The notes below the pieces were generated by a model, which was not told the origin of the DNA, made no database searches, and saw nothing but the letters and a program-made list of their open reading frames with translations. A stretch of 64,000 nt of DNA from the NCBI GenBank assembly GCA_040285825.1, contig JAUPSS010000007.1, positions 2,640,689 through 2,704,688 on the forward strand, in the 5' to 3' direction. The stretch is from Eukaryota sp. TZLM1-RC. Lineage: Eukaryota; Protista; Metamonada: BaSk clade. The position numbers were made by a program, and so were the translations under genes. The stretch's first letter is position 1, and every line of letters begins with the position of its first letter. This document shows positions 5,001 through 58,959 of the stretch, in pieces.

Positions 5001-6198
5001 TTTACCACATTTGCATGGTAAATGATTAGGCCAATTGTCTGGCCATAGGAAACAACGAAAACGCATGTTCAAAAGCCATTCATTGTTTTTTAAAAGAAGT
5101 CCTTAAACAAAGGGAATTTTGGTAACTAAAGTAGCAGCAGAACTATTACAAATGTCCTTTAAGAAATCAGATGATCGTCTTTAGAAACACTCTTTAGCTG
5201 CTTTGGTTTTCCTTGAGTATTTGAATGTAGTTGTCAACAAAAAGACTGGCAGAATTTTCATCGTGTTTATTTGCAAAAACCAAATTGTATTTTCTATTTA
5301 TCTTGTCAGACCCACAGAAGCTCTGGTGTAGTGCGTACTATCAATAATGGAGTCATCAAGAATTAATTTTGATAACAACGGCTCTAAATAGGAATCTACT
5401 CGATATGATTTGCACATTACATAAATTTGGTCCCTGACATTATTCTGTACTTTACTTGTTCATGTGATAAATGCTTACAGTCCAAAAGATGAGTAAACAA
5501 AAGAGGTTTACCACATTTGCATGGTAAATGATTAGGCCAATTGTCTGGCCATAGGAAACAACGAAAACGCATGTTCAAAAGCCATTCATTGTTTTTTAAA
5601 AGAAGTCCTTAAACAAAGGGAATTTTGGTAACTAAAGTAGCAGCAGAACTATAACAAATGTCCTTTAAGAAATCAGATGATCGTCTTTAGAAACACTCTT
5701 TAGCTGCTTTGGTTTTCCTTGAGTATTTGAATGTAGTTGTCAACAAAAAAACTGGAAGAATTTTCTTCGTGTTTATTTGCAAAACCAAATTGTATTTTCT
5801 ATTTATCTTGTCAGACCCATAGAAGCTCTGGTGTAGTGCGTACTATCAATAATGGAGTCATCAAGAATTAATTTTGATAACAACGGCTCTAAATAGGAAT
5901 CTACTCGATATGATTTGCACATTACATAAATTTGGTCCCTGACATTATTCTGTACTTTACTTGTTCATGTGATAAATGCTTACAGTCCAAAAGATGAGTA
6001 AACAAAAGAGGTTTATCACATTTGCATGGTAAATGATTAGGCCAATTGTCTGGCCATAGGAAACAACGAAAACGCATGTTCAAAAGCCATTCATTGTTTT
6101 TTAAAAGAAGTCCTTAAACAAAGGGAATTTTGGTAACTAAAGTAGCAGCAGAACTATAACAAATGTCTTTTAAGAAATCAGATGATCGTCTTTAGAAA
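2044..6198. repeat. Tandem array of about 8 x 505-bp units derived from CRE-like retrotransposon family A
   Basis: The marker GATGATCGTCTTTAGAAA recurs at 2646, 3151, 3656, 4160, 4665, 5170, 5676 and 6181 (spacing 504-506). Unit sequence matches the element at 49819-51630 in two opposite orientations. Confidence 0.95.
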
Positions 6199-14323: not shown

Positions 14324-15483
14324 ATGATCATCGGTGTCCCTAAAGAAATTAAGAACAACGAATCCCGTGTCGGTATCGTAGTCGTTCTCAGGATTTAACA
14401 TAAGCTTGTACTCCTGCTGGTGCTCGCGAATTTGTCAAGAATGGCCACATGGTTTACGTCCAACACACTGCTGGTATCAACTCTGGATTTGAAGATGCTG
14501 AGTACGAAAAGGCTGGTGCCAAGATCCTTCCCACTATCGAGGATGTCTATGCCATTGCTGAAATGATCATCAAGGTCAAAGAACCTCTTGAAGAAGAGTA
14601 TGCTCTTATCAGAGAGGGTACTCTTGTCTTTACCTTCTTCCACTTTGCAGCTTCTGAAACTTTGACTAAGGCTATGATCAAGAGTAAGGCCACATGTCTT
14701 GCTTATGAAACTGTCCAGCAGGGCAACGCTCTCCCCCTCCTCATTCCAATGAGCGAAGTAGCTGGTAGAGCTTCTGTCCAATTTGGTGCCAGATTCCTTC
14801 AAAAAACCGAAGGAGGTAAGGGAAAACTTCTTGGCGGCGTTCCAGGTGTGGAACCTGCTAATGTTGTGATCCTTGGTGGTGGTATTGCTGGAACTAATGC
14901 TGCCATGATGGCTGCTGGACTTGGAGCCCAAGTTACTATCGTTGACATCTCACTTCCTAGACTCCGCTACCTTGACGAAGTTATGCCCAAGAATGTGAAA
15001 ACTTGCTATTCCAATGAAGTCAATATCAGAAGATTGAGCAAGACTGCTGACCTCATCATCGGTGCAGTTCTTATTCCAGGAGCAGAAGCTCCCAAATTGA
15101 TGACCCGTGATATGCTCAAGGACATGGAAGAAGGTTCAGTTATCATTGACATTGCCATCGATCAAGGTGGATGTATTGAAACTTGCGATCATGCAACTAC
15201 CCATTCAGATCCATCCTATGTTGTAGATGGAATTGTCCACTCTTGTGTTGCAAATTTGCCCGGAGCTTTTCCTCAGACCTCAACTTTGGCCCTCACCAAT
15301 GTTACTCTTCCTTATGCCCTCCAACTTGCTAACAAGGGATGGAAGAAGGCTTGCCAGGAAAACGCTGAATTGTGCAAGGGTCTCAACATTGTTAATGGTG
15401 AAGTTGTTTACAAGGCTGTTGCTGATACATTTGATTTGTCTTGTGTTGATGTCAACAAGTTCTTGACTGAATGTAATGAGTAG
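14324..15483 (+). CDS. ald: Alanine dehydrogenase (bacterial type); exons 14324..14372 and 14405..15483
   Basis: Splicing a 32-nt GTATC...TAAG intron restores [22 protein letters not shown]. Hallmarks include IIKVKEP, FTFFHFA, LAYETV, PMSEVAGR, GGGIAG, DIAIDQGGC and VANLPGA. Confidence 0.95.
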
Positions 15484-22316: not shown

Positions 22317-25300
22317 TTACACTTCACCCCTATAAGTTCTGGTTAAATTGCGAATGGACTCAAATTCTGCCAAAAATGCTTCTCTTTCTAGTTTTCGTGA
22401 TAGAGATAAATCATTACCAATTTCTTGGCTGGTATTGAATTCTGAACTGGACCCGTGTTGACTTTGATTATATTGATCTACCCTTTTGATCTGATTAGAC
22501 AACTCAAGCACAGAGGATATAACGCCCCTCGTTTTTGACTCAGCGAGTTCCAATTGCTCTCTTTTTTTAGACAACGCACAACGATCATGTGAAATTTCCA
22601 AAGAAACTTGTGAAAGAAAAGAACAAACCGCAGTGACAAAAGCGACAACGTTGGAAAAATTCAAGGAAACGTTGTCTGGTGCAATTATCGACTCATCTAT
22701 GCTATGTTCAAAATCATTAAATGAATGCATTGTTTCTAATAAATCAAATAATAACCTAGACAACTCACTACCATCAAAATTACCCAACGAATTGGAAAAT
22801 TGATTTAATTCTTTTTCTTTCAAATGTAATTTAATAGATTTTTCTTTAATTAAATGGAACTGATCTTTCAATCGCTCCCCATATTGTTTTAATTGGTTAT
22901 CTTTTTGTGATAGCTGCTCAAACTTTTCTTTCAATTGGGCCTTTAAGCTATTGATATTTGAGTGCTTTTGTTCAATTTCCAGTAATTCATACTTGATTTT
23001 TGCAGTTTCGGCAGTTTTCATTTGTTCAAACTCCTTTCTCTCCGATTCCAAAGCCTGACGTTCATAAAGTACGTCATCAGCCTTTGACTTTTCTTGACAA
23101 AGTTCATTTTTGACCCTTTCCTTATAAGTCTCCAAATCCAAAAGACTTTGTCTGACTGATTCTTCTTTTTTGGAAAGTTCGTTTGAACGATTATCTAATT
23201 CTTTTCTACTTTCTTCCAATTCAATTTTGTTTTTGTTAAGCTCATCTTCCAAATTGATTAAATTAGACTTCAAACCTTCAAGTTCTTGCTGACATTTAGT
23301 TAGGTGTTCATCCCTCTGTTGCAGTTCACCTTCAAAGACAACCAATCTGTCACATTTGACGTCTAAATCTTCAGTTTCCGTTTCTAGTCGAGATTCTAAA
23401 TCAATCAAATTGGACTGTTTCTCGAAAACATCAACCCTCAATTGTTCAAGATGGAAATCTTCAAAAGCAAGTGAAGCAGATGAGATCAAAAGGTGATTAG
23501 CAAAATTTTCTAAAGAAACTCCCTTGCCCTCATAAAACAAAACAGAAGGTGATTGGTGAATTGATTGCTGGATATCAGTTTGATTGGATTGAAGAGCTAG
23601 TTGTTGATTGGCAAGTTCCTCTTCAAGTTCAATCAATCGGTCCTCTTGACTCCTGACGACTGATTCTCTGGCAATAATTTCTGATTCGAAATCAATCAAT
23701 TCTTCCTTTTTCTGATCTACTAATAAACCACAATTATTTAAATATGTTTCCTTCTTATTTAATTCTTGGCTTCTTTGGTTAAGAACAGACTGTTCTCTAG
23801 ATAATTCTTCATTAATATTATCTGATTCTATTTGTTGTTCCTTCAATTTGCTAAATTCTTCTTCTAATAAAAGAGATCTCTGCTTGATTTCTTGTTCTTT
23901 TTGAATTAATTCAAAAGACTTTTCCAACAATTCGGATTCCAAATCCTTTAAATTAGATTCTTTACTGTTTAATTCCGTTGAAAACTCTTCTAAATCATGG
24001 AATTGATGCTTCTTCTGCTCTAATTCTGATAATTGGTTCTTGATAAAACCTTGCTCAAGTCTAACTGATTCTTCCAGACTTTTGATCTCTTCAGATCTGT
24101 GTTCCAAAAATTCGCGTTCACTGACAAGCGTTTGCTCCTTATTTTCCAGACATACTAATTTTTGTTCTTTTTCAGCTAAATCTTCTTGACGTGCATCTAA
24201 TTGTTGAGAGAAAAGAGCCAATTTTTGTTCTTTTTCATCTAAATCTTCTTGACGTGCATCTAATTGTTGAGAGAAAAGAGCCAATTTTTGTTCTTTTTCA
24301 TCTAAATCTTCTTGACGTGCATCTAATTGTTGAGAGAAAAGAGCCAATTTTTGTTCTTTTTCAGCTAAATCTTCTTGACGTGCATCTAATTGTTGAGAGA
24401 AAAGAGCCAATTTTTGTTCTTTTTCATCTAAATCTTCTTGACGTGCATCTAATTGTTGAGAGAAAAGAGCCAATTTTTGTTCTTTTTCATCTAAATCTTC
24501 TTGACGTGCATCTAATTGTTGAGAGAAAAGAGCCAATTTTTGTTCTTTTTCATCTAAATCTTCTTGACGTGCATCTAATTGTTGAGAGAAAAGAGCCAAT
24601 TTTTGTTCTTTTTCATCTAAATCTTCTTGACGTGCATCTAATTGTTGAGAGAAAAGAGCCAATTTTTGTTCTTTTTCATCTAAATCTTCTTGACGTGCAT
24701 CTAATTGTTGAGAGAAAAGAGCCAATTTTTGTTCTTTTTCATCTAAATCTTCTTGACGTGCATCTAATTGTTGAGAGAAAAGAGCCAATTTTTGTTCTTT
24801 TTCATCTAAATCTTCTTGGAGTGCATCTAATTGTTGAGAGAAAAGAGCCAATTTTTGTTCTTTTTCAAAACATTGATGTTCAAAACTTGTTTTAAATTCT
24901 TCAAATTCAAATTTTTCATCATCAAGTGTTTCCTGAGCCTCAACTAACTGACCTTCCTTGACTGTGATCTCTTCCCAATGTCTCCTGACATCCAGTTGAT
25001 CCGCACTGATCTCCTCACTCAAAATTTCAAGTTCACCCTTCAAAATTTCGAGTCGCTCTTTTTCTACTTCATTTTCGACCCTTGATTTATATAAACCTTC
25101 AATTGCATAACTCATTGCATCACTACGTTCAACCAAACCTCCTTTGTACACCTCAGCAAGGGTTAATTCTTCACTTAATTCTTGGTACAATTGATCTATA
25201 GATGATTGTGATTCTTTTAATTGTAGGGATAAATCTGTTAGCTCCAGCTCTTTATTAACCAGAATTGATTGAAAATCATCGAGTTCTTGCTGACGTGACA

Positions 25301-26609: not shown

Positions 26610-26679
26610 GTGAATCGAAGGAAAACTACTGTGAATTTCTATCAAAACGCACTTCTGGCTTTTGACCAATTCATGCAAT

Positions 26680-26830
26680 CTTGATAGACGTTAAGCTTAC
26701 TTTAGATCTATCACTATATGATATCACGATCAAATGATAGTTAAAGCAGCAACATCACAATACGCGTACAGGTACGCAATACATGGAATGACACTTATCT
26801 ATGGGGTCTTCGGAACGCCTCAGGTCTTTC
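26680..26830 (-). ncRNA. Candidate Fanzor omegaRNA (scaffold plus guide); boundaries uncertain
   Basis: Lies immediately 3' of the Fanzor stop codon, the established omegaRNA location. Minus-strand hairpins: GCGTA-cctg-TACGC (26764-26777), CTATCAT...GTGATAG (26708-26740) and an alternative TGATAGAT...GTCTATCA (26682-26712). Confidence 0.45.
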
Positions 26831-28857
26831 ATTGTAGTAGTGCTCACTTGTGGCAATCTCCAGTTGATTTCTGGAAGCTGAGATGTCCCTCGACCAGAGT
26901 GTCTGACATTGAGGGCATACAAACTTATCATTGTGCACCCTCCCATCATCGTGATACAACTTTTGATTGAATACTTTACAGCAATTCGTTTTGTCAGATG
27001 TGTAGAATTCATCTCCATTAGGCTTCACATATTTAAAATGTTTCTGAATCTCCTTCAAAAAGCGCTTCCTTGGGGTTTTCACAGATTGTCTTGATGGCCC
27101 ATCACCTCCACTACCAAACCAAATTATGGTTTCTCTTCCATTAGCCATTAGTTTAATTTTTTCAATTAATCCCATTATCCTTTTTTGCCTTCTTATAAAG
27201 AAATCAAACTTGTTGCGGCGCAGGGCTCGGCGATCTCCATTTATCAGCAGTTGGTCTAGTATAGTTCTCGGACGGAAGACGGGATTGCTGATTTCTTCCT
27301 GTGTCGGTACCCACATCAAAGGCATTGCTACTTCATTAAGATATTTGTGTAAATTCTTAGCAAAATAGCAATTTGGTGATGCATGGGTCAGGACCGGGGG
27401 GTGAATGATCTTCTTTGCGTTTGGATTCAGAACAAGGCTCGAAAGTTGATGATCAACATTGTTATTATCAATTCTTGATCCAATTGAATAACCACACAAA
27501 TTTTTGTGATTAGGATCAATTGCACAAAATGAATATTCAATTGGATCAACTGGCGGAGGCTCATAGGCGTCGTCAGTTCTTCGACGTTGCCTAGGACGAA
27601 CCTGTTGTTGAAGTCTAGAGTTTCGCTTCCGACTCTTTGCAGGCATATCGAGTTCACCACTGGCTATGGTGGTTGCCACTTCTCTGGCTGTCCGGCGATT
27701 CTTATTTTTTTTGGGGGCAAAAGAAAAAGTGAAGCGGATTGAAACAGCATCTGAACTGATTGTGTAAGTCAGATACTTCTTTTTTCTGAAAAATGCAAAC
27801 GGATCTTTCAGCAGACAGCGGTTGGCATTAAAAGAGAGAAAATGCTTTTCCAGTTGTTGACTAAAAGAGATAAATCCAGGTGAATAACTAGGGGATGGGG
27901 ACACGGCATTTCTTCGCATGGTGTCAGATGCAATATTTTCCAGAAAGGATAAAATATTTAGCCCAGCAGTGAATAAGAAGGTGATGTTGTCTGGACTGAG
28001 ATCAACATTGTCCAGCATCAACATAGCGTCAAAACGATGAGGGTCGGCAACCTGCTGAATAAATAGGTCCATTATGTACTCATGGTGACCTTCATCATAC
28101 CATGCGCGCAAAGAGTCAGGAATAGTGGCTGCAGTCGTGTTCACCACTAATGAAGCATATTTCTTTGGGCAAGGGCACTCAAAGAAGGTAGCCATTGTCC
28201 GGAAGAAGTTCAGCTTCCAGGAGACAGGGCCATCAGTAAGTATTTGACAAAAGCTGTTCGCCATTTGCAGTGCGCGAAAGCTTCTAATGTCAGAGTGGCA
28301 CCAGTTGTCGGTTCCCTTCTGAAAGCCAATAGGAGGAAACGGCCAGCCAGGTCGGAAAGAGACATCATATAGTGCGCGGTACACTTCCATATGATTCTCG
28401 AATGGGCGTCTCACAGTCGGGTGAGGTACCATTACAAAGTCTTGACATTGATACCAAAACTGTTGTTGATATAACCAGAAAGCCATTTCCGGATATTGCA
28501 GGACAAACAGCTGTGCTAACCGGGCAGTAAGCACAGTGACAGTTCGAATATAGCGAAACTGTCTTTCCATTGAAACAAGAGCTGCAGTAGAGCAGAACTG
28601 AGCAGCACTTGCTGGAACTGTCGTCTTGCTGTCGTTTATTGGTTGCTCACGACGGTTAACCTCCCAGGGGAGTACACGCCCTCGACGTGGCAACTCTGGA
28701 TTTGCCATTGGGGTGAATATGTCAGTCGAGAAAAGATCAGACAGTCAACAATACAAATTTGATTTATTCACAACTTCTTACATCTATACAAATACAAAGC
28801 CTGAGCAAAATGATAATTAAACACTATAATACGTGATATTTAAGCTGCCGCAACTAT
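26737..28857 (-). mobile_element. Putative non-autonomous Fanzor-carrying DNA transposon
   Basis: Imperfect inverted termini: ATAGTTaaaGCAGCaacATCAC (26737-26758) versus the reverse complement of 28833-28857, ATAGTTgcgGCAGCttaaatATCAC. TA at 26738-39 and 28855-56 could be a target-site duplication. No transposase lies inside. Confidence 0.5.
26795..28708 (-). CDS. Fanzor (Fanzor1-like) RNA-guided RuvC endonuclease, eukaryotic TnpB homolog, 637 aa
   Basis: Motifs in order: ISSDAVSIRF (TDG-like WED motif), RuvC-I FCAIDPN, helix RRNKFDFFIRRQK, IIWFGSGG (Gly at the canonical RuvC-II Glu position), displaced catalytic Glu in GDEFYTSDK, Cys pairs NCC...CPQC, and RuvC-III WSRDISASRNQ near the C-terminus. 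The ORF is uninterrupted and intronless. Confidence 0.88.
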   Translation of the reverse strand: MANPELPRRGRVLPWEVNRREQPINDSKTTVPASAAQFCSTAALVSMERQFRYIRTVTVLTARLAQLFVLQYPEMAFWLYQQQFWYQCQDFVMVPHPTVRRPFENHMEVYRALYDVSFRPGWPFPPIGFQKGTDNWCHSDIRSFRALQMANSFCQILTDGPVSWKLNFFRTMATFFECPCPKKYASLVVNTTAATIPDSLRAWYDEGHHEYIMDLFIQQVADPHRFDAMLMLDNVDLSPDNITFLFTAGLNILSFLENIASDTMRRNAVSPSPSYSPGFISFSQQLEKHFLSFNANRCLLKDPFAFFRKKKYLTYTISSDAVSIRFTFSFAPKKNKNRRTAREVATTIASGELDMPAKSRKRNSRLQQQVRPRQRRRTDDAYEPPPVDPIEYSFCAIDPNHKNLCGYSIGSRIDNNNVDHQLSSLVLNPNAKKIIHPPVLTHASPNCYFAKNLHKYLNEVAMPLMWVPTQEEISNPVFRPRTILDQLLINGDRRALRRNKFDFFIRRQKRIMGLIEKIKLMANGRETIIWFGSGGDGPSRQSVKTPRKRFLKEIQKHFKYVKPNGDEFYTSDKTNCCKVFNQKLYHDDGRVHNDKFVCPQCQTLWSRDISASRNQLEIATSEHYYNERPEAFRRPHR

Positions 28858-29029
28858 TTTCTTTCTTGAAAGGGTTACAGTTGAAGGAGTTTTCTCGGTG
28901 ATAACAGTAGCATATCCAATCAAGAAAACGTGTTGTTTTAATGAGTTTGTATAAAGTTTATTTTCATAATGGGATCAACTTGACACTTCTTTAATCTTGA
29001 AATAGAAACCACTCAACCTAACAATGACT

Positions 29030-29232
29030 CTTGACAGGACAACATTCACAACCTCCTTCGTGACCCTGGTACCTCTACCATCCTGTCTTGTCCTGTGTCC
29101 TTAACTTCCCTCAACGTCAGCGGAAACAACATTTCTGACTCCCTTACACCTACAATTGTCTCGTTCCTAACTATTAATAGTACGCTAACCACATTCGCTC
29201 TTGGCCTTTCTTCTAGGAACCAACCTAAATAG
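29030..29232 (+). pseudogene. Short LRR gene fragment
   Basis: Translates as SLTSLNVSGNNISDSLTPTIVSFLTINSTLTTFALG followed by a stop; no complete ORF. Confidence 0.45.
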
Positions 29233-29661
29233 ACAAAAGCTTGATTTCAATGGAATTATCCGTTCTTGTTGACAATGTTATTATTGTACTTTTGACGCAA
29301 ATACCAAGCCCAAACAGCAACAATACCACCTAGCACAAGACCACAAACAATGTCTCCCACATGGTGATGATTGTCAATGTTTCTGTCAATGCATCTAAAG
29401 GTACCGTTTTCAGAACCAGGAGATTACTCGTTGTGTTCACAAGAACGAACTGTTTGCAGTTGTGACTTTCATATCAACTTTGGTCTAAGCAATATTGTTG
29501 GTGGTATAAATAACCTCTACTGTGACCCATCTTGCTGAAGATGAATATAATAGTGAATTTGAAAATACTTAAATTTTGCGGGGAATTGATTAATCTATCT
29601 CGTTTCCCATGATTTAGAAAATTTCTTAATTAATAAAAAAAGTATTGCTGCAACAGGCACC

Positions 29662-29790
29662 TTTTAAAACTTAACCGAAAACCTTAACTAATGCTTTTAC
29701 CTACTAAAAACCCCATCAATTGAATGACGGGAGGCTTTCGCTATTTACTTGAATAAGAACTAGTTTGTTATAAAACTCCGTTATGTTGAT
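29662..29790 (-). repeat. Isolated 3' end of CRE-like family D (direct repeat of about 29858-29982)
   Basis: TTTTAAA(A)CTTAACC...CCCCATCAATTGAATGACGGGA...GTTATAAAACTCCGT.ATGTT occurs twice, about 195 bp apart. Confidence 0.8.
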
Positions 29791-29857
29791 CAAGAAGGAC
29801 AACTAGAAGCTGTTGATTTTTTGTAGTAAAATATTTTATTCTGGAAACAGAGACATT

Positions 29858-31445
29858 TTTAAACTTAACCAGAAACCTTAACTAAAGCTTTTACCTACTC
29901 AAACCCCATCAATTGAATGACGGGACATTTTCACTATTCACTTGAATAGCAACTCGCTTGTTATAAAACTCCGTAATGTTATTCAAAATGGAGTTAATAT
30001 AACGAGGAAGAGCTTTAAATAACGAAAATACAATTCTGTTCTTCCAAATAAAAAAATCGAGAGTACGATTATTTTCTTTGAGAAGATTTCCTAAGTCATC
30101 TAAAAAATTAGGACCTTCAGTTCCAAGGGTATACAGTACATTAAAACAAGTTTCAAGGGTACCAAATTTTTGGAAGTAGCAATTGGGACAAATTTGATGT
30201 TTCTGCCTCTTGCTCCATTAAAACGTTGTAGAAGGGCTTCGTACTTTGATTTCTTGAAAGCTCTGCAACTTTGAGTAAATGTCGAATGTCAGAATTGCAA
30301 CTTCTGTTCCATGGAGACACAGTAGTACATTCGATAATTAGTTCAGTTCCATCATACCAAGCACATTGAATATCACTTCGTTTTTTGCTCAAACTGATAT
30401 TTAATTCATCAAAAAGTGGTTCTAAACGAGGATGATGAGCACATTTTAACAGATCATAAATACAATCACGAACTGCATTGTGGATAATTGATTTTTTTGT
30501 GTACATTTAGAGCAGGAAATAAGGTGATTAAAAGAACCATATGCACCACATTTACATTTCATATTTGATAAACATTGTGGAGGGAGGAACTTCAGTCCGA
30601 TTCAGATGACTGCTAAAAATTGAATATCTGAGAGCAATAGTCAAAATCTACGAGGAATTTGAGTTATCAAACAAGATGCACTATTTTGAAAAGAATTCAC
30701 ACTATCCAAAGAAGTCAAAAACAATTATAAAGAAAAATCACTGGAGTTGTTAGCCATGCTTCTTTGGTTGTTCACTGATTCTGCCTCTAAATAATTAATA
30801 ATCTTCATCTGTAGTTTGGGAACTGTTCACAAAAACCTTAATAAATCTTTGATTTCAATTGAGTTAAAGTCAAGTTTTGCAGAAAATAATGATTTTTAGA
30901 AGTCATTCGAATAATTTTCTAAAAAGGTACGCAAAAATATCATTACAAATGAAGTAGAATTATGTGCTGAATAATTCCACTGATGAGGAAACCGTAGCGC
31001 AAGTTCAAATAAGAAATTCTAGATTCCACCTTGAAACGCAGCATTTGATAAAATGAATGAACGAGTTTGGCCAATACCACCGTAATTATGGGATCTAAAA
31101 GCATGAAAGGGAATATCATCAATATTATTGATGTTCAGTACTGAACCCAAAAATTGAGTTCTCTTAGACAAAAACTGTTTGACATATTGGGTGCTCAAAA
31201 TTGGAGGAATGGAAGGAATCAAGTGGTTAATTTTTGAACCAAAACATAACCTATCAACAAGAAATTTGTTATGCTTCTTAGAAATCAAGTTCTCAATTTG
31301 ATCGAGTTCAGCTAAAGCTTTTTCAACTTTTTGTTCAAGTGATTGAGAAGTACAATCCTCATTACCTATTAATGTTCCCAACAACTCAATACAATCATCA
31401 TCATAATTGACAAATGGCAATTCGATTCCCTCAATAGAAATACAA
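29858..31445 (-). mobile_element. CRE-like retrotransposon family D, decayed and 5'-truncated
   Basis: IELLGTLIG, LCFGSKINHL, YGGIG, HNAVRD...EP, KRSDI...IIECTTV, and a downstream WKNRIVF-type tail; multiple frameshifts. Confidence 0.8.
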
Positions 31446-31919: not shown

Positions 31920-34137
31920 TTACATTTTTCCATGGAAGGTTCTTTCAATAACTTCTTCTTGTTGAGCACGAGTCAAACGGTTGAAGTTAACAGCATACCC
32001 AGAAACTCTGATGGTGAGTTGAGGGTACTTTTCGGGATGATCCATGGCGTCCATAAGGACTTCCTTACGAACACAATTGACGTTGATATGGAATCCACTA
32101 GATTGGAAGTATCCATCAAGCATGGCACTAAGGTTACTGACTTGTTCATTGTCAGCTTTTCCGAGGGCAGATGGGAGAATTGAGAAAGTGTTGGAAATAC
32201 CGTCACGACAGTCATCATAGCGGATCTTGGCAACAGAGTTCAAAGAAGCAATAGCACCAGACTTATCTTTTTGGGAAGAAGGGTTGGCTCCAGGAGCAAA
32301 AGCGTCTCCCTTACGGCGACCGTCAGGGGTGTTACCAGTCTTGCGGCCATAGACAACATTAGAGGTAATGGTAAGAATGGAGAGAGTGTGAGTTGCGTTA
32401 CGATATGTGGGGTTCTTGCGGATACGTTCAATAAATTGGTGACAGAGATCCACAGTAATGGAATCAGCACGATCATCGTCATTACCATAGCAAGGGAATT
32501 CGCCTTCAGTCTTGAAATCAACAATGATACCAGATTCATTTCTGATGGGGTATACCTTAGCATACTTGATGGCAGAAAGGGAATCAGCAACATGGGAGAG
32601 ACCAGCAATACCGAAAGCCATAAGACGTTCTACATAGGTATCATGGAAAGCCATCATAGCAGATTCATAACAATACTTGTCATGAGAATAGTGAATGGCA
32701 TTCATGGTGTTGACGTAAAGTTCAGTAAGCCAATCCATGTATTTCAAGAAGTGTTCCCAGACGGCGTTGTATTCAAGAGGACCGTCACCTTCCATGGAAC
32801 CGAATTGAGGACCAACTTGTTGACCAGTGACTTCATCAATACCATTATTGAAGGAATATAGCAACAACTTAGCAAGATTACATCTAGCACCAAAGAATTG
32901 CTTTTGCTTTCCGAGGCTCATAGCAGAAACACAGCAAGCAATACCGTAGTCAGATCCAAAGATTGGTCTCATGAGATCATCATTTTCGTATTGGATAGAT
33001 GAAGTATCAATAGAAACCTTGGAACAGAAGTCCTTGAAAGTTTGGGGAAGAGAAGGAGACCAGAGAATGGTGATATTGGGTTCAGGAGCGGGTCCAAGAT
33101 TGTAGAGAGTTTGAAGAATACGGTAGGTAGTTCTGGTAACCATATGGTTTCCACTTTGATCCAAACCACCCAAGACAATAGTAACCCAGGTAGGATCACC
33201 GGCGAAAAGATCGTTGTATTCGGGAGTTCTTAAGTGGCGTACCAAACGGAGCTTAATAACAAAATGATCAATGAATTCTTGAACTTGTTCTTCAGTGAAT
33301 TTTCCACTAGCGAGATCACGTTCAATGTAAATATCAAAGAAAGCATCGGGGCGACCGAAAGACATAGCAGCACCATCTTGTTGCTTGATGGCTGAAAGGT
33401 AGGCGAAATAAGTCCATTGGATGGCTTCTTGAGCGTTTTCGGCAGGACGAGATAAGTCAAAACCATAGATCTCTCCCATCTTTTTAATTTGCTTAAGAGC
33501 CTTGATTTGTTCAGAAACCTCTTCATGGAGGCGCATAGTGTCTTCAAGCATAGTTTTGGGAAGATTGGCCTTATCAGCTTGCTTTTCTTGGATGAGACGA
33601 TCAATACCGTAAAGAGCTAATCTTCTGTAATCACCAATAATACGTCCACGGCCATAACCGTCTGGGAGACCGGTGATAATTCCTGCCTTTCTGGCGGTTC
33701 TCATTTCTGCGGTGTAAATGTCAAAAACACCATCATTGTGAGTTTTGGCATACTCGGTGAAGATTTTTTCGGTTTCAGAGTCCATTTTGTAACCATAAGA
33801 TTCACTGAGATAAATGATGAGTAGTTAAAACATACCATGCGGTAGCGGTGATTCTGACACCACCCTGACATTTCATGGTTCTTTGGAGAGGAGCTTCACC
33901 TTGGAAACCAACGATGCTTTCCTTTTCCTTATCGATGTAACCTGCACCATGAGAGGTGAGAGTACTGGGACGGACGGTATCAAGATCGAGTACACCCTTC
34001 TTGATTTCCTCCTTAAGAAGTTCAGCAGTCTTGGCCATAAGGTCCTTGGTGTTCTGGGTAGCACCAGCTAAGAAGGAGGTGTCTCCATCATAGCGTTTGA
34101 TGTTTTCAGCAATGTAGGATGCAACGTCAATTGGCAT
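31920..34137 (-). CDS. pflB: Pyruvate formate-lyase (glycyl radical enzyme); exons 34137..33836 and 33804..31920
   Basis: A 31-nt GTATG...TCAG intron (33805..33835) joins [14 protein letters not shown] in frame. Motifs [17 protein letters not shown], catalytic IACCVS and glycyl-radical loop RVSGYAV are present. Confidence 0.97.
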
Positions 34138-35776: not shown

Positions 35777-35931
35777 TGTTAGTTTTGAATAGTATTTATA
35801 GCTAATAGTTTAGTTTATTTAGTATCCGCCCTATAGTATAAGAAGAGAGAATACAATTCCTCTTCGTAATAAATTACACTACCGTTACATCACTCTGTAT
35901 GAACTCTAACACACAGCAGCCAAGACCATCA
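35777..35931 (+). repeat. 5' LTR
   Basis: TGTTAG...CATCA; I count 5 mismatches to the 3' LTR. Confidence 0.92.
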
Positions 35932-38900
35932 ATACGTATTGGGTCCCCAGAGGCTCGACGTAGGATCCTTGAGGAAGAAACTGGTCCCTCTTCCTCACCA
36001 CTAACCGCAGACCAAGCTCCCGTGCCCCCTCTTTCAGTAGAAGCTTTTGCGCTTCCTGAAGACTCTCCCCTTGAGGGTTACGCCCCAAAAGAAGACAGTT
36101 CCCCTCCAGAGGATTCCGGTTCAATAGAAGGAAGCTCCCCTCCTCAGGATTCTGTTCCTGTGGAAGGAAGAAGTTCTTCGTTGGTCTCCTACGACGACGA
36201 GGACGTAGAGGAAACCGTTGCTCCTCTCCCTTTTTCACAATTGAGGGTATCTGAAGTCCCACCTTCTTCCCTCCCTGAAAGAAGCTCTGAAGTACCACTT
36301 TCACCTTCTACACAGAGCAGAGAGACCGTTCTACCTTCTCTCGCCATTAAGGAAGAATCTGGAGTCCAGCCTGTTCCTCTCCTACAAAGGCCATTGAAGT
36401 ACCATCTTCATCCCTCTGTACCAATTCTGAGGTCCCACCCTCTCTCTCTCAACAGCTCCTCCCTTCAGTTCCAACTGTTAGGTGAACTATTCAAAATCCT
36501 GCTGTCCCAACTTCAGGATCTCCTCTTACTACAACGACAGTAAGCAGAGTTAACAACCTGACTGTTTCCCCTGCCCAGGCTAGAGAAACAACTCCTAGCA
36601 CACCAAACTTTCCTTCGAATCTTTCTGAAAAGCAAAGAAAAAGGTATGAACTAATATTTTTGGATATGGTTGACTATGAGGAACCTTCCAGGGAATTCTC
36701 TCCTATAACTCAACCTCCGGTTCCTTCCAAGGCACCTATATCCGAAATTGATAGAGTAACTGGTGAGGTTTCTAAACAATTTTTAGAACGTTACTTCCAA
36801 GAAGAACGAAACTGGGAACTCAGGAAAAGACTGGATAGAGAGATCAAGGCCAGAAGAGGAGCATCCTCTACACCTGCCCATCATCAACCACTATAATCAG
36901 TATCTGTACCCCTCTATTCTGGTTCCTATGCTAGTGATAGTGTTCGTGGAAACAGTGCTTCCCGCCAGCACAGACCTAATGTTCCTTATAGGGATTCTAG
37001 AATTAACACTAATGATCCTGAGGTCATTCCTCCTACGGAAATGAGCAAAGGACATCCCCCATTCTTTGGACCTAGTTTCGAAACTGAACTAGGAATCACT
37101 CCCAGGATAGGTCCTTATCTCCCATTTGAAAGGATTGAACCCGAGAACGCTAAAATCGACCCCGAACATTCCTCTGAACCAAGATCCGGTGTCAGGTACT
37201 TGAAGACCACTAGAGAGGGTGTTTTCACACGTTTCGTTGAAGATGAAGACAATCTCTTCATCAACGAAGCAAACCCCTGCCCCTTCCCCATGTTCAGCCC
37301 TAAGTGCAATGCCTCCTTAGACATTATAATTGATAGGGATCATAGGACAGGCTGGTGGTTTACCGAAACTACCTATCAGGAAAGACTCTTTCTTTATAAT
37401 AGACGGCCTGATCACATTGCTTCCCTCTGTGGTTGAAGGTAGGATTAAAAAGACTCGCTTGGTGCAACCAGCAGTATTTGCTCATCAAACCCCAGCCCAA
37501 TTTGAAGATGTTCAAGAGTCATCCCAATCTCAACCTCAACTGAGTGAAGTTCCAGCTTCCCCGGCACAACCCGCCGAATCACCACTTCCTTCTATGGAAA
37601 CTGATTCACTTCCTACCAGGGAAACCTCTAACCAATCTGCTATGGAACAAGCCGACGACAACGTTGTCACTGTGAGCAGTGAATCACCAACTCCCATCAC
37701 ATCTTCTGATGCGGTGCCTGCTCCCATCACTCCCGTCAGTCGAGCTCCTCAATCCCAACCTACACCTTCCACGACAGGTTCAACATCCTCCATTTCCTCC
37801 CATCAATCACCTTTTTCGGGCACTTACGAAAGCAGACTTCTCCTTTCTTCAATGATTGGATCAAGAGACCGAGATGACAGACGTAGGGACCGTGCTAAAC
37901 GTCCTTATCTCGAAGCTTCCAATTTGAGCGACGCTGATAAACTTTTGAAGTTTGTCAACAAATTCATTCTCTGGAGACGTACCGACCAAGTCCTAAAAGA
38001 AACCAGAAAAAACGTTGAGGATCCAGTTCAGATTGCTCTAGCCAACGAAGTTGCTAGACTTCGTGAAGAATTAGAACAAGCTAGAGAAGGTTCACAACCA
38101 TCGATTGATGAGTATTTCGGCAATATCTCCGGTGAACCAGTTCATGAATGGGACTTGTTCCGTCAAGCCATGAGGATCAACCCCCGAGGCCTCGCTGAAT
38201 GTGTCACCCCCGAGGTGCTAAACGCGTTAAGTTATCAAGGCGCTCATTTAGCTATCTCTTCTCCCACGGTTCCTACCCCAAAAGATGAACGCATCATTTG
38301 GGCTTAAATTCTGAGAAGAACCCAATTCAGAAGACTGGATGAGGCAAATCGAGCTCTCCTTTCAACAAACAAGGACTGGACTGAAAGAGATTACGGTAAC
38401 AGGTGGATTGACTTCATGGTCAACCTCGGTAGAGTTCTGACTCGCTCCACTGCCATTCAAGACACTCGGGGCATCTCTCAACAATTGAGAACATTCTCCA
38501 TAAATTCCCCCCCCCCCAGCGGACAGACTTTCAGACTAAAGTAGTTGCTACTCATGTCCTAGAAAGCGTAGGAATTATCCCTATCAGAGACAGACTCCTC
38601 AGGATCTGGTCCTCTTCCTCTCACTACTCATCCGATGGCCACACCCTTGGCGAATTCTTCAGTGTTCTTCAAATAGAATGCGAGAATTTCTGCAACGCCA
38701 GATCGTTCATGGAACAGCTGAACTTTTATTATACGTCACTATTTATGTACTGTGGAAACCAAACCCCCTACAACAACAACACAACCGCACACAGAAAGCT
38801 CAGCATGGAAAGATTCCCTAATCAACCCACTCGCCAACTTGGAACGTACCAAGACACACAACATTCAAACTAATTTCTTTTCAGAACAAGCTGAATACGA

Positions 38901-41900
38901 TTCTGATACAATTTTCATGGTACAGTCCATGACTCACACAACCAACTGCCTACAATCAAACTTCATGATCAACAATGTCGAAGTTAAAGGCATAATTGAC
39001 TCTGGTGCAACATGCTCAGTAGTCACAGAACACGTCATCAGTAATTGTAACATGGCACGTTCCAACGAAACCATATCCTACAAGATTGCTGATGGAACTA
39101 CCTCACAGTCCCTCGGTACTGCTTCTGGAGCCCTTAGCATTAGACTAAGTAGTGTTACCCAGATTGTACACGTGAAACACAAGTTCAGCATCGTTCCTGG
39201 ACATGAGACCATTCTCATTGGTGCTGACTTGTTGAGTCACCTTGGGCTGATGAACAACAAGGGCATTTATATTAGAATGGACGACGCCTGTCGCACATTA
39301 CTACTACCTGAAGCTGAATTCGATCATCGAATATCACAAGTTTTAGAAGTCGTCAACGTTTCCACACGTTGGTTGGAACACATCAACTCATCTGGTTGTA
39401 CCATCAACCTCAACAATGACCATTTCAAGAAGTCCCTACTTCAAACTTTGAAAGAGTTCGAAGACGTATTTACCCTTAAGCCTCATGCTCAAGGTATTGA
39501 TTGCCCTCCCATGGAAATCAACTTCTGCAATTTTGACGTCAAAGTTAGAAGACCCCCCAGGACCCTGAATCCAGCCAGGCTAGAGGTCGCTAACCAAATT
39601 TTCGACGAACTTGAGACTCAGGATTTGCTGTTCCATCGAACCATGAGTTCAGCTCCCCTGTCTGTCTAGTGGTCTACCCAGATCACCGTAAACCTCGTCT
39701 TACTGGTGATTATAGTGGCAAGGACCGAGTCAACGCCAACACCATTCCTGTTGAGCCCAACCTTCCAAGGATCTCCGATGTGCTGGTATTTCTTTCCCAA
39801 GCGAAGCACGTAGGCACCTTTGACCTCCTCAAGGCCTTTTGGCAACTCAAAATTGCTGAAAAGGACTGGCAGAAAACAGCCCTATGCATTCCTGGTAAAA
39901 GCATCATGTTCAAACGTGCAGCTTTTGGCCTCAAGAATGTTTCAGCCGTTTTCCAAAACGTCATGGCTGATATCTTCTCTGGAGATGGTGTATTCATCTA
40001 CATAGATGACAACATAATTATCGGTTCAACCTTTGACGAATTCATCGAGTGTCTCCGACGTGTTCTCGATCAAGCTAGATGCAAAAAAGTTTTCTTGGGA
40101 CTTCCAAAGTGCCATTTTGTGTTTTCCAGACACCCGATTAAGAAACTGGGCAGTGTTTTCCAAAACAAACAACGCACTATCGATCCCACTCGTGTTGAAT
40201 CTTTGTTGAATTTTCCTAGATCAAAGACAATCAAAGACGTCCGCAGCCTCGTAGGATCAGTCAACTTCATTAGAGAATGGCTCTCTCAGGTATCTGAGCT
40301 CATCGCTCCTATCATCAGATTGACTAAGAAGGTTGGGAACAACGCCAACGTTGAACCCAAACCCCGAGCGCAACGCCAACAATGGACCGACATACACGAC
40401 GGACTCCTTCAAAAGATCAAACAACTGATAGCTCAAAACATGCCGCTCATCTTACCTCCACTGGAAAACCAAATTCTAATAAGTTGTGACGCATCCGACA
40501 TTGCTGTAGGCGTCGTTATATGGGAACAAACCGAACAAGTCGACGACTCCGGCGCTCCCCTAAACAACAGGAAATGTAGGCCTATCAGCTTCTTCAGCCG
40601 CTTGTTAACCAACTCGCAAAAGAACATGCCAACAAACCAAAAGAAACTCTATGCCATCTTACTGATGTTGACACAAAGTGGTTTCGAAAACTACTTGAAA
40701 GGAAGGAAACTGGTCATATTCACAGACCATCAAAACCTTACCTACATGTTCTCTGCTCCGGACAAGAACAGAATCGTAACCAGATGGTTACCCATTTTTT
40801 CTGAATTCTGCTTTGAATTGGTGCACACCAAAGGGGAAGATAACTTCTGGGCTGATATGTTGTCTCGAATAAGTCTATAGACCATCATGAGATCAATCAT
40901 TTGTCCCTTCAAATGTCTCCAAATTTTCATCCAATATTTTATATCGATAAAATAGATGGAACAGAAAACGAAAGACACTACATAGAAGATTTAAACAACT
41001 TCGAACGTATCATGGTCATCAAAGAACGATGTTCCAACGACCTCCCTATTTTCGAGCCAAGGCTCTGTAGGATTAGGTCCGAGCAGAAGCTTGCCACAGC
41101 TTCCAAAGACCCCTCTTTCAACAACTGTGTTCATAACAATAATCTTGATTTATATATGACTCACAACAACAAGATCGTGATTCCCAAATCACTCATAAAG
41201 GACACCCTTAACTTGTTGCACGGACTTCTGCAAGGAGGCCATCCAAGCAAAGCTGAAAGTCTGAACAAGCTCAGAAACAGTGATTATTGGTGGCCAAACA
41301 TGCTCACTGACATGACTAAGTACGTCCAAGAATGCCCCTCCTGTCAGAAAACTAAGCCAGTTCCTAAACTGCATGTTCCCCCAACCGGTTCATTGTGGGC
41401 TGACAGACCTTTTGCTCGCGTCAACGCCGACGTTATTGGTCCTCTTCCAGAAGATCAAGAAGGCTACAAATACATGCTCGTATTTATTGACAGCTTCTCT
41501 AGGTTCACGATCATCGTGCCTTTAAAAGAGATAAATGCCAATCTTACTGCAGATGCATTAATTTGGAAAGTCTGTGCCATCTTTTGTATACCATTTCAAA
41601 TCCACAGCGATAATGGGCCTGAATTTTTCAAAGCTGTCTTTGACGAACTGAGCAAATTTTTGGGCATAGAGGTGTCAAAGTCAATTCCAAGTTTTTTTCA
41701 GTCCAACGGCTTCGTAGGGCGCCGACACAGAGACATTCTGCAAAACCTACGGAAATTGCTTGTAGACTTCAACGCCTACGATGTGTGGTCCGAATATTTG
41801 CCTTATGTGCAATTATTGATAAGCTCTTCCAAGAGTTCAATGACAAACCACACTCCATACCAAGTCATCTTTGTCTCAGATGTGTCTCCTAGATCAGACC

Positions 41901-42542
41901 CTGGCAAAATTCTTGAAATCATTGAAAGCTCGACGTCTGAGTTATCTTTTATTCAAGAAATTCAATCTAAATTTCGAAGGTTGAAAGAAAAACAGGAAAA
42001 GGCAGCACACCGTCAAGCTTCCAAAGCTTCCAAGCTGACTAGATCAACAACTCCAAACCCTTTTGAAGTTGGCCATTTGGTATTAAGAGCTTCCAGCTTT
42101 TCCGCTAAGCTTCATGGAGATTATTTCGGACCTTTCCTTATTACCGAAAACGTATCCAATTCGTCTGTAAATATTAAGAATCTCTGCACCGGTACGATCG
42201 TCCAAGCTAGCGTCAAACATCTAGCACTCTGACACTCCAGCCTTCCTGCCAACGATGAGTTCCACTCATGGGTTGCTGCTTATTGATGTCGAAGAACACA
42301 TCATAGAAAGGGTGCTCAGTCAAGACGGTGACTTTTGCCAAGTGCAATGGCCTGGAAAAGAGATCACCACTGAACACATATCTACAGTTCAAAATACCGC
42401 CGCGTATAAAGACTTCATCATGACTTCGAAAGCACGTAACCGTACTAAATCCGCTCCTCCCAAGAAGCGTTCCAACATTAGTATCTCACCTCCTGTGACT
42501 AGAGCTTCCAGGGCTCGTCGCTCGAAAGAGAGGAAAAGGCAG

Positions 42543-42697
42543 TGTTAGTCTTGAATAGTATTTATAGCTAATAGTTTAGTTTATTTAGTATCCGCCTTAT
42601 AGTATAAGAAGAGAGAATACAATTCCTCTTCGTAATAAATTACATCACCGTTACATAACTCTGTATGAACTCTAACACACAGCAGCCAAGACCATCA
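42543..42697 (+). repeat. 3' LTR
   Basis: Direct repeat of 35777-35931, preceded by a polypurine tract. Confidence 0.92.
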
Positions 42698-43206
42698 ATA
42701 TGTGGAGTTGTCCTTGTGATTTCACCTCCCCCAAGATATTTGCTTCCAGTGTACAAACACAAATCAAACAAATATTCATTCTTACACAATAGACCATTAC
42801 TGTTTTGTCAACGGAGAATCCTCACCTCTAATTTTCCTTTCAACGATGTTGCTACAAGTTCGTGAGTCATGTAAATACCTTTTTTTGCAGGAAATGTCAT
42901 TGTTAGATAAGAAAACTGGTGTGCAAACTCACAAACACTGAACTGGTATTTCAATATTGATAATGATGAAATGATTTCAATTTAATGGCAATTTTTTGAA
43001 ATTACTAGTCATTTACTGCTTAAAATATGCTGAATTAAGGTTTGGTACGGAAAACTCTGGACTTCATTCAATAGTTTAAATTAGACAAATTTTTATTATT
43101 GGTACAAAAACATAAAGCTTCTTTAAAATGGTGTTGACACAGAATCTTGTTCTATATTGTTCTTCTGCACTTGATACAATCAGCACAGGATAAACAGTAT
43201 TCAACA

Positions 43207-58893: not shown

Positions 58894-58959
58894 TATTCGA
58901 GAAATTGTCAATAACAAGGAAATAAGTGTTTGTAGTTTAAAAAGTTGAAAGGTCAAGTT

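Follow-up and report, generated by a model that had tools for sequence, protein, structure and literature searches.

Fanzor proteins are recognised, under the criterion of Bao and Jurka, by a C-terminal D-x(125-275)-[TS][TS]-x-x-C4 zinc finger-x(5-50)-RD signature, and their RuvC-I motif was described by Yoon 2023 as near-exclusively DPG; in SpuFz1, Mg is bound by D383 and N385. CRe-1/2/3 are Helitron2-type Fanzor elements in which the 3' end is constant while 5' ends and target duplications (TSDs) vary (PMC3627910), and CrFNuc-1, architecturally the enzyme closest to that described here, bound RNA with no cleavage (PMC10530073). Whether Fanzor causes the variable TSDs of Chlamydomonas Helitrons has been asked (PMC3627910, PMC10288648). 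Homing by TnpB has been reviewed (PMC13565253); in the literature we found no demonstration of homing by any Fanzor, and no paper combining Fanzor with metamonads.

The window, i.e. the whole 64,000-nucleotide stretch of DNA analysed here, derives from the anaerobic protist Skoliomonas litria (Metamonada), a host as poorly sampled as the original prediction had supposed. That prediction described an unbroken, intronless gene for a 637-residue Fanzor1, and the reading frame (26795-28708, minus strand) indeed runs uninterrupted for 637 codons, is identical to the annotated gene call and requires no intron. The motifs AIDPN, GDEFYTS and SRDISASRN are present at residues 396, 565 and 606, with SDAVS at 319 and WFG at 530, and PF07282 (TNB zinc ribbon) matches residues 566-614 over its curated cut-off (E 5e-6). 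Coordinates of all features are collected in Table 1.

Table 1. Features of the Skoliomonas locus (positions in the window)
Feature	Position	Strand	Basis or remark
Host LRR and coiled-coil gene, 1430 aa	22317..26609	-	first ATG 19 nt past element end
Predicted 15-nt guide in host flank	26614..26628	-	by analogy with SpuFz1 architecture
Right copy of 12-bp target duplication	26617..26628	-	
Fixed right end, GAAATTCACAG	26629..26639	-	kept across subfamilies and species
3' tail of element, predicted omegaRNA scaffold	26629..26794	-	folding and conservation
5' arm of predicted closing stem, TTGTGA, pairing with the element's last bases	26755..26760	-	
Fanzor1 ORF, intact, 637 aa	26795..28708	-	Pfam, structure and profile matches
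RuvC-III D608 (RD; SpuFz1 D606)	26885..26887	-	alignment and profile
Variant zinc ribbon, T-N-C576-C577 in place of first CxxC, second pair C598-x-x-C601	26906..26983	-	
Alternative catalytic Glu E567 (DExxTS; SpuFz1 E541)	27008..27010	-	alignment and profile
G532 at the canonical RuvC-II Glu place (WFG)	27113..27115	-	nearly invariant in relatives' alignment
RuvC-I D398-P399-N400 (equivalents of SpuFz1 D383/N385)	27509..27517	-	profile alignment
5' non-coding part common to copies	28709..29248	-	copy comparison
Antisense LRR-like reading piece inside 5' non-coding part	29035-29229		by eye
Copy-specific 5' cargo	29249..29793	-	without match in 11 other loci
PAP2-phosphatase-like C-terminal piece in cargo	29259-29423		motif by eye
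Left copy of 12-bp target duplication, one mismatch	29794..29805	-	score above all 60 null draws

Assignment of this frame to Fanzor1 is practically certain. The fold comparison that the original prediction proposed favours Fanzor1 over both TnpB and Fanzor2: for the predicted structure, Foldseek ranks 1-7 are all Fanzor1 (SpuFz1, PpFz1 and GtFz1; E 9e-12 to 2e-7), with TnpB at E 1e-2 and Fanzor2 at E 6.5e-2 (ApmFz2 at rank 48), and VIA gives Z 17-20 across 460-520 residues against Fanzor1 structures and 10.7 against Fanzor2. A profile built from relatives, used for full-length comparison with SpuFz1, covers that protein end to end (E 7e-55); a PDB search with the single sequence returned no match, Fanzors being found only through profile and fold. 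By Foldseek, VIA and profile alike, the architecture, with its REC/WED insertions, resembles Fanzor1 structures more closely than it does Fanzor2 or TnpB, and the serine recombinase partner that is a trait of Fanzor2/IS607 occurs in none of the loci.

D398-P-N400, E567 and D608 correspond to the SpuFz1 active site, and the D/N/E/D set is complete. The rearranged RuvC that had been foreseen is borne out: G532 replaces the canonical Glu, E567 lies in DExxTS, the two align with MG and DEYKTS of SpuFz1 in the profile match, and G532, E567, C598, C601, R607 and D608 are all nearly invariant in the alignment of relatives. Of the Fanzor signature, D398, T570-S571 and RD607-608 are present together with PF07282; the first zinc CxxC deviates, and reads T-N-C-C throughout the Skoliomonas clade. 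The strict DPG is likewise absent from RuvC-I; the DPN found there does not mark divergence, being shared with SpuFz1 (VIDPN). SDAVS, which had been taken as TDG-like, is equivalent to TDG in position only: in the profile alignment it falls in the WED TDG column of SpuFz1, but its letters are SDA, and relatives have SDG or SNG. That the protein of this particular copy cuts DNA we judge slightly the better bet.

The gene does not stand alone, a context absent from the original prediction: the element around it measures at least 2.6 kb and exists in many copies, so that its intactness is common to several sister copies. The part common to other copies is 26629-29248, and the element probably spans 26629-29793. 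The statement that other mobile elements of the window are broken was checked and holds for the Gypsy pol (ORFs of 305, 403 and 443 aa) and the non-LTR elements (fragments of 120-410 aa). Between copies the 3' end is fixed and the 5' ends vary, with gene-like cargo; in this copy the cargo also holds one unit of a 150-nt repeat. The element ends in CACAG, its hairpin stops 9 nt before that end, and T is the next base in most copies; the terminal CAG looks like a splice acceptor. GCTTC precedes the left copy of the target duplication, and the TAM candidate is YTC. Duplications of 6-13 bp were found in several copies, and about half lack a clear one. As the target duplication, the 12-bp match was preferred to a 9-mer, TCACAGTAG, at about 29525. 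A TSD-like match in another locus (L006, score 10) proved false, as it falls within sequence common to the copies; single matches of score 10 are therefore not proof of duplication. A cassette bounded by terminal inverted repeats (TIRs) with a TA duplication at 26737-28857 was rejected, as copies share sequence well past both points.

As regards the carrier, no TIRs were found between the element ends, and this together with a duplication varying from 6 to 13 bp departs from a TIR (DDE) element. Helitron1 elements (5'-TC ... hairpin ... CTRR-3', insertion between A and T, no TSD) differ in that the present element ends in CACAG and TSDs occur. Agreement in insertion signature is seen with Helitron2 of the CRe type; the asymmetric inverted repeats (ATIRs), a defined left end and an autonomous Rep-helicase partner with common ends were not found in the window and the loci compared. 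No transposase was detected near the copies, the adjoining ORFs belonging to the host or to remnants of other Fanzors, and no Rep/helicase gene near any of about 15 copies.

In 12 of 15 copies the element end is followed, at a distance of 0-70 nt, by a host ATG on the same strand, where 4% would be expected. The predicted guides would consist of 5' leader sequence or initial codons of host genes. This orientation-specific preference for gene starts is described for no Fanzor in the literature that we found. Inspection by eye upstream of 37 host genes gave no clear initiator motif. The downstream genes were also considered as retrocopies, which was rejected: they lack a poly(A) junction, the centrin gene at one locus (L009) seems to have retained an intron, and at another (L008) the TSD spans the native ATG.

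Folding of the tail gives z -4.75, with 0/200 shuffles as stable, and the tail is conserved to 97% among copies; the structured part extends over about 26629-26777, its 5' boundary being uncertain. The closing stem has a pair probability of about 0.95 with 15 nt of flank and at most 0.31 without, is predicted for subfamilies A, B, C and GEM and weakly for RCL, and shows compensatory changes between subfamilies. In MAFFT alignments the tails are unalignable across subfamilies except for the last 20 nt. The tail is modelled as a likely omegaRNA scaffold that would end in a double-stranded stem, as in Fanzor1. The predicted guide, its length taken from PMC10432273, starts at 26628, directly behind an element end that is 166 nt beyond the stop codon; the construct with 150 nt of downstream sequence proposed originally is therefore too short to reach either. 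Flanks differ between copies and have little beyond an initial T or TA in common. No second match to the predicted guide with fewer than three mismatches was found in the window or loci, and an Rfam search with the tail of a sister copy gave no real match.

The protein's cluster at 90% has 28 members, most of them short, and DNA identity to three further intact copies reaches 97-98%, which supports the recent origin foreseen for this copy. Sister families are present in three Skoliomonas species, and since copies are dispersed between eukaryotic genes on Mb-size contigs in three Skoliomonas assemblies, the locus is eukaryotic and not bacterial contamination. Fanzor1 thereby extends to Metamonada, in a clade confined to Skoliomonas with 13% identity to solved Fanzors. 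Comparison of coding sequences supports purifying selection in this family: intact copies give a dN/dS of 0.26-0.35 (about 0.3), and 24 of 55 private changes are synonymous (p 0.0005-0.02). The selective maintenance previously proposed is therefore supported for the family, without reaching significance for the window copy alone, in which 6 of 15 private changes are synonymous (p 0.10-0.28). Its other nine are non-synonymous, five of them (F39C, G424S, A572D, N592H and I620T) at positions conserved in subfamily C; residue 572 is Lys in the RCL family.

We think it reasonably probable that the locus is a mobile element, young and non-autonomous, that encodes a Fanzor1 RNA-guided endonuclease, with homing and trans-mobilisation. 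By analogy with SpuFz1 and TnpB, a transcript passing through the 3' end would yield an omegaRNA in which about 150 nt are scaffold and about 15 nt flank; Fanzor with this RNA would cut the element-free allele at a T/C-rich TAM (candidate YTC) followed by a guide match, and repair off the filled allele would copy the element in (homing or retention). More tentatively, new sites might be reached through an enzyme supplied in trans, for which the fixed 3' end would be the starting point and which would stop now earlier, now later. Our first choice of mobiliser, advanced with some hesitation, is an HUH rolling-circle Rep of Helitron2/Replitron type that would act on one strand near gene starts. 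Copying of an element with the same nuclease via RNA, by a non-LTR RT/endonuclease priming at the transcript 3' end (TPRT), appears rather unlikely. TPRT would explain why the 3' end is constant, the 5' side truncated and TSD length variable, since a fixed 3' end with staggered 5' ends and TSDs of 6-13 bp is its classical signature, and both the window and the loci are rich in non-LTR fragments; however, the element has no poly(A) or repeat tail, its 3' end is unlike those of the window's three non-LTR families, the 5' cargo has antisense gene-like pieces with joints lacking poly(A), and the 3' flank is not carried along, though the guide flank would be part of any omegaRNA or mRNA. Improbable in our judgement is insertion by Fanzor itself, in which relaxed guide matching would give breaks near gene starts and host repair synthesis would copy the element from the 3' end for a variable length. 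The lack of a transposase near any copy and the selection on young copies speak for it, as does the proposal by Craig 2023 that Fanzor cutting causes the non-canonical, variable TSDs of Chlamydomonas Helitrons (PMC10288648), a signature that recurs in this unrelated host. Nevertheless, flanks with so little in common mean that donor guides would mismatch new sites; the cuts of known Fanzor1 enzymes fall 14-21 nt away from the TAM and are staggered by no more than about 5 nt, which would not produce 12-13 bp TSDs at the guide start; and a frameshift common to three subfamily-B copies, if not an error of assembly, suggests that copying took place in trans. We give equally little credence to a transposase-free variant in which Fanzor, alone or with a generic nicking enzyme, would open DNA at transcription starts, the element being copied in from its 3' end, then supplying the host gene's upstream region and taking the leader as its next guide.

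Two further readings concern function. The window copy may be a dead-on-arrival or decaying passenger, Fanzor1 by descent, intact because young and now inactive, which we doubt without dismissing: the nine non-synonymous changes, the predominance of short cluster members, the non-significant selection on this copy and the position of A572D, adjoining the catalytic motif and zinc site, point that way, whereas the catalytic and zinc residues, the tail and the closing stem are all intact and position 572 is not invariant. Domestication as a host-beneficial RNA-guided regulator at gene starts (TldR-like), and not a selfish cutter, would accommodate the purifying selection and the host-leader or first-codon guides, but is very improbable given an intact nuclease site, many dispersed young and broken copies at non-orthologous sites, and a TAM parted from the guide match in the filled allele.

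On the favoured reading, that of a mobile Fanzor1 element, the element matters more than the protein. As a candidate editor the protein has 637 aa and no intron, its scaffold, guide start and TAM can be predicted, and the predicted limits of the guide RNA allow a cleavage test; the element presents the Chlamydomonas-type TSD signature in a lineage unrelated to those algae, and its young copies are intact, a reagent that, by supplying an intact enzyme and predicted RNA boundaries, makes the Fanzor/TSD question testable.

Among characterised enzymes, SpuFz1 of Spizellomyces punctatus (PDB 8GKH, 9CEU-9CEZ) shares with the ORF its size class, whole-chain fold (TM about 0.52, at the Z values above), the active site IDPN / G...DExxTS / RD with a G-to-E spacing of 35-36 residues, and a structured 3' tail followed by variable flank, at 13% identity. 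It differs in its first zinc pair (CxxC vs T-N-C-C), in TDG vs SDA and in its 75-nt scaffold vs the 166-nt tail here; SPu-1 has TIRs of 30-33 bp and a TA duplication within TAM and scaffold, whereas the Skoliomonas element lacks TIRs and its variable 6-13 bp duplication must fall in the guide. GtFz1 and PpFz1 (Fanzor1; PDB 9CER, 9CF0/9CF1) are the next-best structure and profile matches at 10-13% identity, GtFz1 having Asn in RuvC-III where the ORF has Asp. TnpB of IS200/IS605 and IS607 and Fanzor2 share the RuvC, zinc ribbon and right-end-derived guide logic, but are shorter, match far less well in structure (Z 10.7-11.2), and have TnpA or serine recombinase partners, none of which lies beside the Skoliomonas copies. 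Replitron-1 (PMC10288648) is copy-and-paste and orientation-specific, likewise with variable-length TSDs and a right-end hairpin; its own Rep, terminal direct repeats and fuzzy right ends are not seen here, nor is its insertion far from genes (PMC9977147). In CRe-1/2/3 of Chlamydomonas reinhardtii (CrFNuc; PMC3627910, PMC10530073) the ends match verified Helitron2 elements with ATIRs, whereas no partner Helitron was identified for the Skoliomonas element; the Fanzor has introns, unlike the intron-free ORF, and no start-codon docking is reported. Like the Skoliomonas element, however, they are non-autonomous, keep their 3' ends intact while the 5' ends vary, make TSDs of variable length (7-19 bp in CRe) with T-rich sequence ahead of the 5' TSD, and have captured extra 5' sequence.

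An ORF scan of the window returned a single unbroken 637-codon frame carrying all the motifs named in the original prediction, and the NCBI gene call on the 3.2-Mb contig is identical to this sequence, with cluster members being Eukaryota sp. TZLM1-RC proteins; this isolate is Skoliomonas litria, an anaerobic free-living metamonad (PMC11603281). A Pfam model of the TnpB/Cas12f zinc ribbon matches residues 566-614 with a score above its cut-off. A single-sequence search against solved structures gave no match, so that the protein is divergent, as had been claimed. With an AlphaFold2 model built from 46 sequences (mean pLDDT 83), the seven best Foldseek matches in the PDB were all Fanzor1 (SpuFz1, PpFz1 and GtFz1; E 9e-12 to 2e-7, TM ~0.5), confirming the predicted class, with TnpB at E 1e-2 and mimivirus Fanzor2 only at rank 48; VIA-align Z values were 17-20 over 460-520 residues for these three proteins and at most 14.4 for everything else. 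A profile of relatives from which the window protein was left out matches full-length SpuFz1 (E 7e-55); in the alignment IDPN, DExxTS and RD all fall into register, as does the Gly that takes the place of the canonical Glu, bearing out the proposed rearranged RuvC. The Mg ligands of SpuFz1, D383, N385, E541 and D606 (PMC10432273), correspond to D398, N400, E567 and D608; as SpuFz1 itself uses D383 and N385, the DPN of the window protein is no oddity. True departures from known Fanzors are T-N-C-C instead of the first zinc-ribbon CxxC, common to the Skoliomonas clade, and the motif predicted to be TDG-like, which reads SDA. Convergence of the catalytic triad on one site, as expected, rests on alignment and secondary structure. 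This is a genuine Fanzor1 with its reading frame intact, and it belongs to a new clade from Skoliomonas.

Features of the element and of its surroundings (L, compared locus; GEM, GEM-RC1; RCL, TZLM3-RCL)
Feature	Location	Detail
Fanzor1 ORF	window 26795-28708, minus strand	637 codons
SDAVS	residue 319	
AIDPN	residue 396	
WFG	residue 530	
GDEFYTS	residue 565	
SRDISASRN	residue 606	
Right end, window copy	window 26629	GAAATTCACAG
Right end, subfamily B		GAAATTCTCAG
Right end, subfamily C		GAAATTCACAG
Right end, GEM		GAAAATCCACAG
Right end, RCL		GAAAACCCCAA
Target duplication, window copy	window 29794-29805 and 26617-26628	12 bp, one mismatch
Target duplication	L002, L008	13 bp
150-nt units	window 29652-29799, 29846-29992	84% identical
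RCL-type tail copy	L010:19307-19535	230 nt
Subfamily-B frameshift	L005:10770-10790; L008:10770-10790; L006:1640-1660	CT dinucleotide run
GEM frameshift	L007 and L011, about 10915	T run
More distant Fanzor family	L001:4594-6488 (minus); L004:1-506	25% identity to subfamily B; PF07282 match
Second start-adjacent repeat	L001:14497-14556; L002:13027-13051, 3429-3467; L004:21042-21067; window 58894-58923	short; abuts ATGs of unrelated host genes
Third repeated end	L006:4507-4566; L001:6708-6742; L008:2460-2494	hairpin then CTAG, few bases before host ATGs
Repeats in coiled coil of downstream LRR gene	window 24156-24866	about eleven, near-identical, 63 nt (21 aa, three heptads)
Tandem repeats	window 2168-6198	about eight 505-nt units, 98-99% identical, derived from non-LTR element piece
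Gypsy-type LTR element	window 35777-42703	161-bp repeats 96% identical; pol in three ORFs
Pyruvate formate lyase, bacterial type (Pfam)	window 31920-33785	consistent with anaerobic host
Alanine-dehydrogenase-like gene (by eye)	window 14449-15483	consistent with anaerobic host

Close relatives (at least 30% identity over most of the chain) are confined to three Skoliomonas assemblies; beyond these only weak matches were obtained (E 1e-7 or worse), all seven looked up coming from metagenomes or sequencing-run assemblies, and a literature search found no publication combining 'Fanzor' and 'metamonad'. Counting genomic copies, as the original prediction had proposed, gave a 90% cluster of 28 members (4 of the 15 listed having 632-637 aa) and two same-genome sister subfamilies of 18 and 17; clusters elsewhere number 8 (GEM-RC1) and 41, 14 and 10 (TZLM3-RCL). 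Among intact copies pairwise dN/dS is 0.26-0.35, with dN 0.012 and dS ~0.04, near the non-coding divergence of 0.03-0.036. Private changes in four copies, picked as intact gene calls and hence biased against stops though not against missense changes, are synonymous in 24 of 55 cases, above neutral expectation (p 0.0005-0.02 depending on the assumed transition bias). The description of the window copy as recent or selectively maintained therefore holds as regards its 97-98% DNA identity to three intact copies and selection on the family, but the synonymous excess is not significant for this copy by itself, and five of its nine private replacements (F39C, G424S, A572D, N592H, I620T) fall at sites conserved in subfamily C.

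One frameshift is common to all three subfamily-B copies and another to both GEM copies, each bridged by the gene caller with false introns; these represent either broken masters that were copied or long-read assembly errors. Their position, in a dinucleotide run for B and a run of T for GEM, means that some copies may look 'broken' through long-read artefacts. The more distant Fanzor family is broken into two ORFs, and one gene call (P0013), in which a C-terminal Fanzor piece is by eye fused with a MULE-like transposase tail, may be a nested insertion.

In a comparison covering 11 loci every copy shares one terminal base, 166 nt past the stop codon, and the terminal motif is retained across subfamilies whose proteins share just 45-50% identity. 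The 5' ends are variable: sequence sharing among six subfamily-A copies (the window copy's own subfamily) ceases at five points, 220-800 nt before the ATG. No terminal inverted repeats were found in the compared copies, nor any transposase inside or near them. In several copies the opening bases of the right flank are found again upstream, as a direct repeat; those of the window, L002 and L008 each outscore 60/60 null draws, at the left junction itself L009 has a repeat of 8 bp and L011 one of 6-7 bp, and in about half of the copies no target duplication was seen. An equally high-scoring hit in L006 was a false positive. Because the left repeat of the window sits between two similar 150-nt units, themselves without match in 11 other loci, 29793 is a likely rather than a certain left border. 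The bases preceding the left repeat in subfamily-A copies (GCTTC, TCCTC and perhaps TTTTC) suggest, on thin numbers, YTC as a candidate TAM, the motif beside the target. Cargo peculiar to each copy separates the left repeat from the shared part: 545 nt in the window, including by eye a PAP2-like piece, and ~430 nt for L002. It has no match at any other compared locus. The L010 tail copy, comprising the RCL element's last codons and tail alone, is either an extreme 5' truncation or a stand-alone locus for omegaRNA, the guide RNA.

In 12 of 15 cases (three host starts in this count being our own ORF calls) a complete right end is found -1 to 69 nt ahead of a host ATG on the same strand, against 4% of non-genic positions and orientations; even 10 of 15 would give p 3e-11. 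The window copy ends 19 nt before the ATG of an LRR gene, and downstream genes at other loci are of HGH1-, VPS51-, SET-, YggS-, ARM-, centrin- and glyoxalase-type. This placement is seen in all three Skoliomonas species, at L009 and L010 the element interrupts a short spacer between head-to-head genes, and a literature search did not find start-codon docking described for Fanzors. The element is transposase-free, with an unusual insertion signature and a gene-start preference. The second start-adjacent repeat probably represents the right terminus of a separate family of elements.

The final 150 nt of the element fold well beyond shuffles (z -4.75), and the predicted folds of A, B, C and GEM have a closing stem, enclosing one or two hairpins, in which the terminal bases pair with an upstream segment; the pairs covary (TGTGA/TCACA for A and C, TGAGA/TCTCA for B, TGTGG/CCACA for GEM). 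Evidence for this putative omegaRNA feature is moderate, because each stem taken singly would arise by chance with a probability of 0.07-0.2 or more, that of subfamily A predominates only with flank included, and RCL yields no clear closing stem; the prediction fits the double-stranded terminal stem described for Fanzor1 RNAs (PMC10711439). By analogy with SpuFz1, positions 26628-26614, the 15 nt after the element end, would be the guide. In Fanzor1 elements described elsewhere, the 3' target duplication belongs to the scaffold and the 5' one to the TAM (PMC13565253), an assignment that cannot hold here since duplication length varies; instead, the duplication would occupy the beginning of the guide, leaving a partial self-target of 12-13 nt in the filled allele. 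As SpuFz1 is inactive at 8 bp of pairing and active at 15 bp (PMC11423790), short self-target duplications may be tolerated.

Going by what is established for the family, with an omegaRNA derived from the element's own 3' end, the Fanzor would cut the element-free allele in a TAM-dependent manner and repair would be templated by the filled allele, a route shown for TnpB and inferred for Fanzors (PMC13565253). CrFNuc-1, which formed an RNP and left a TAM library uncleaved (PMC10530073), counsels caution over predicted nuclease activity. Creation of new insertions by Fanzor-made breaks and repair synthesis (compare PMC10288648) appears rather improbable, and the main rival, target-primed reverse transcription, is a less doubtful though still unlikely source of the copies. 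Our tentative preference, by analogy, is for mobilisation by a trans-acting HUH Rep starting at the fixed end; an enzyme targeting single strands at promoter bubbles would also account for the orientation bias. The closest architecture to that described here is provided by Chlamydomonas CRe-1/2/3, which are Fanzor1-only, have intact 3' and variable 5' ends, and likewise show variable duplications following T-rich bases and extra 5' sequence (PMC3627910); a HUH Rep is favoured because these elements belong to Helitron2.
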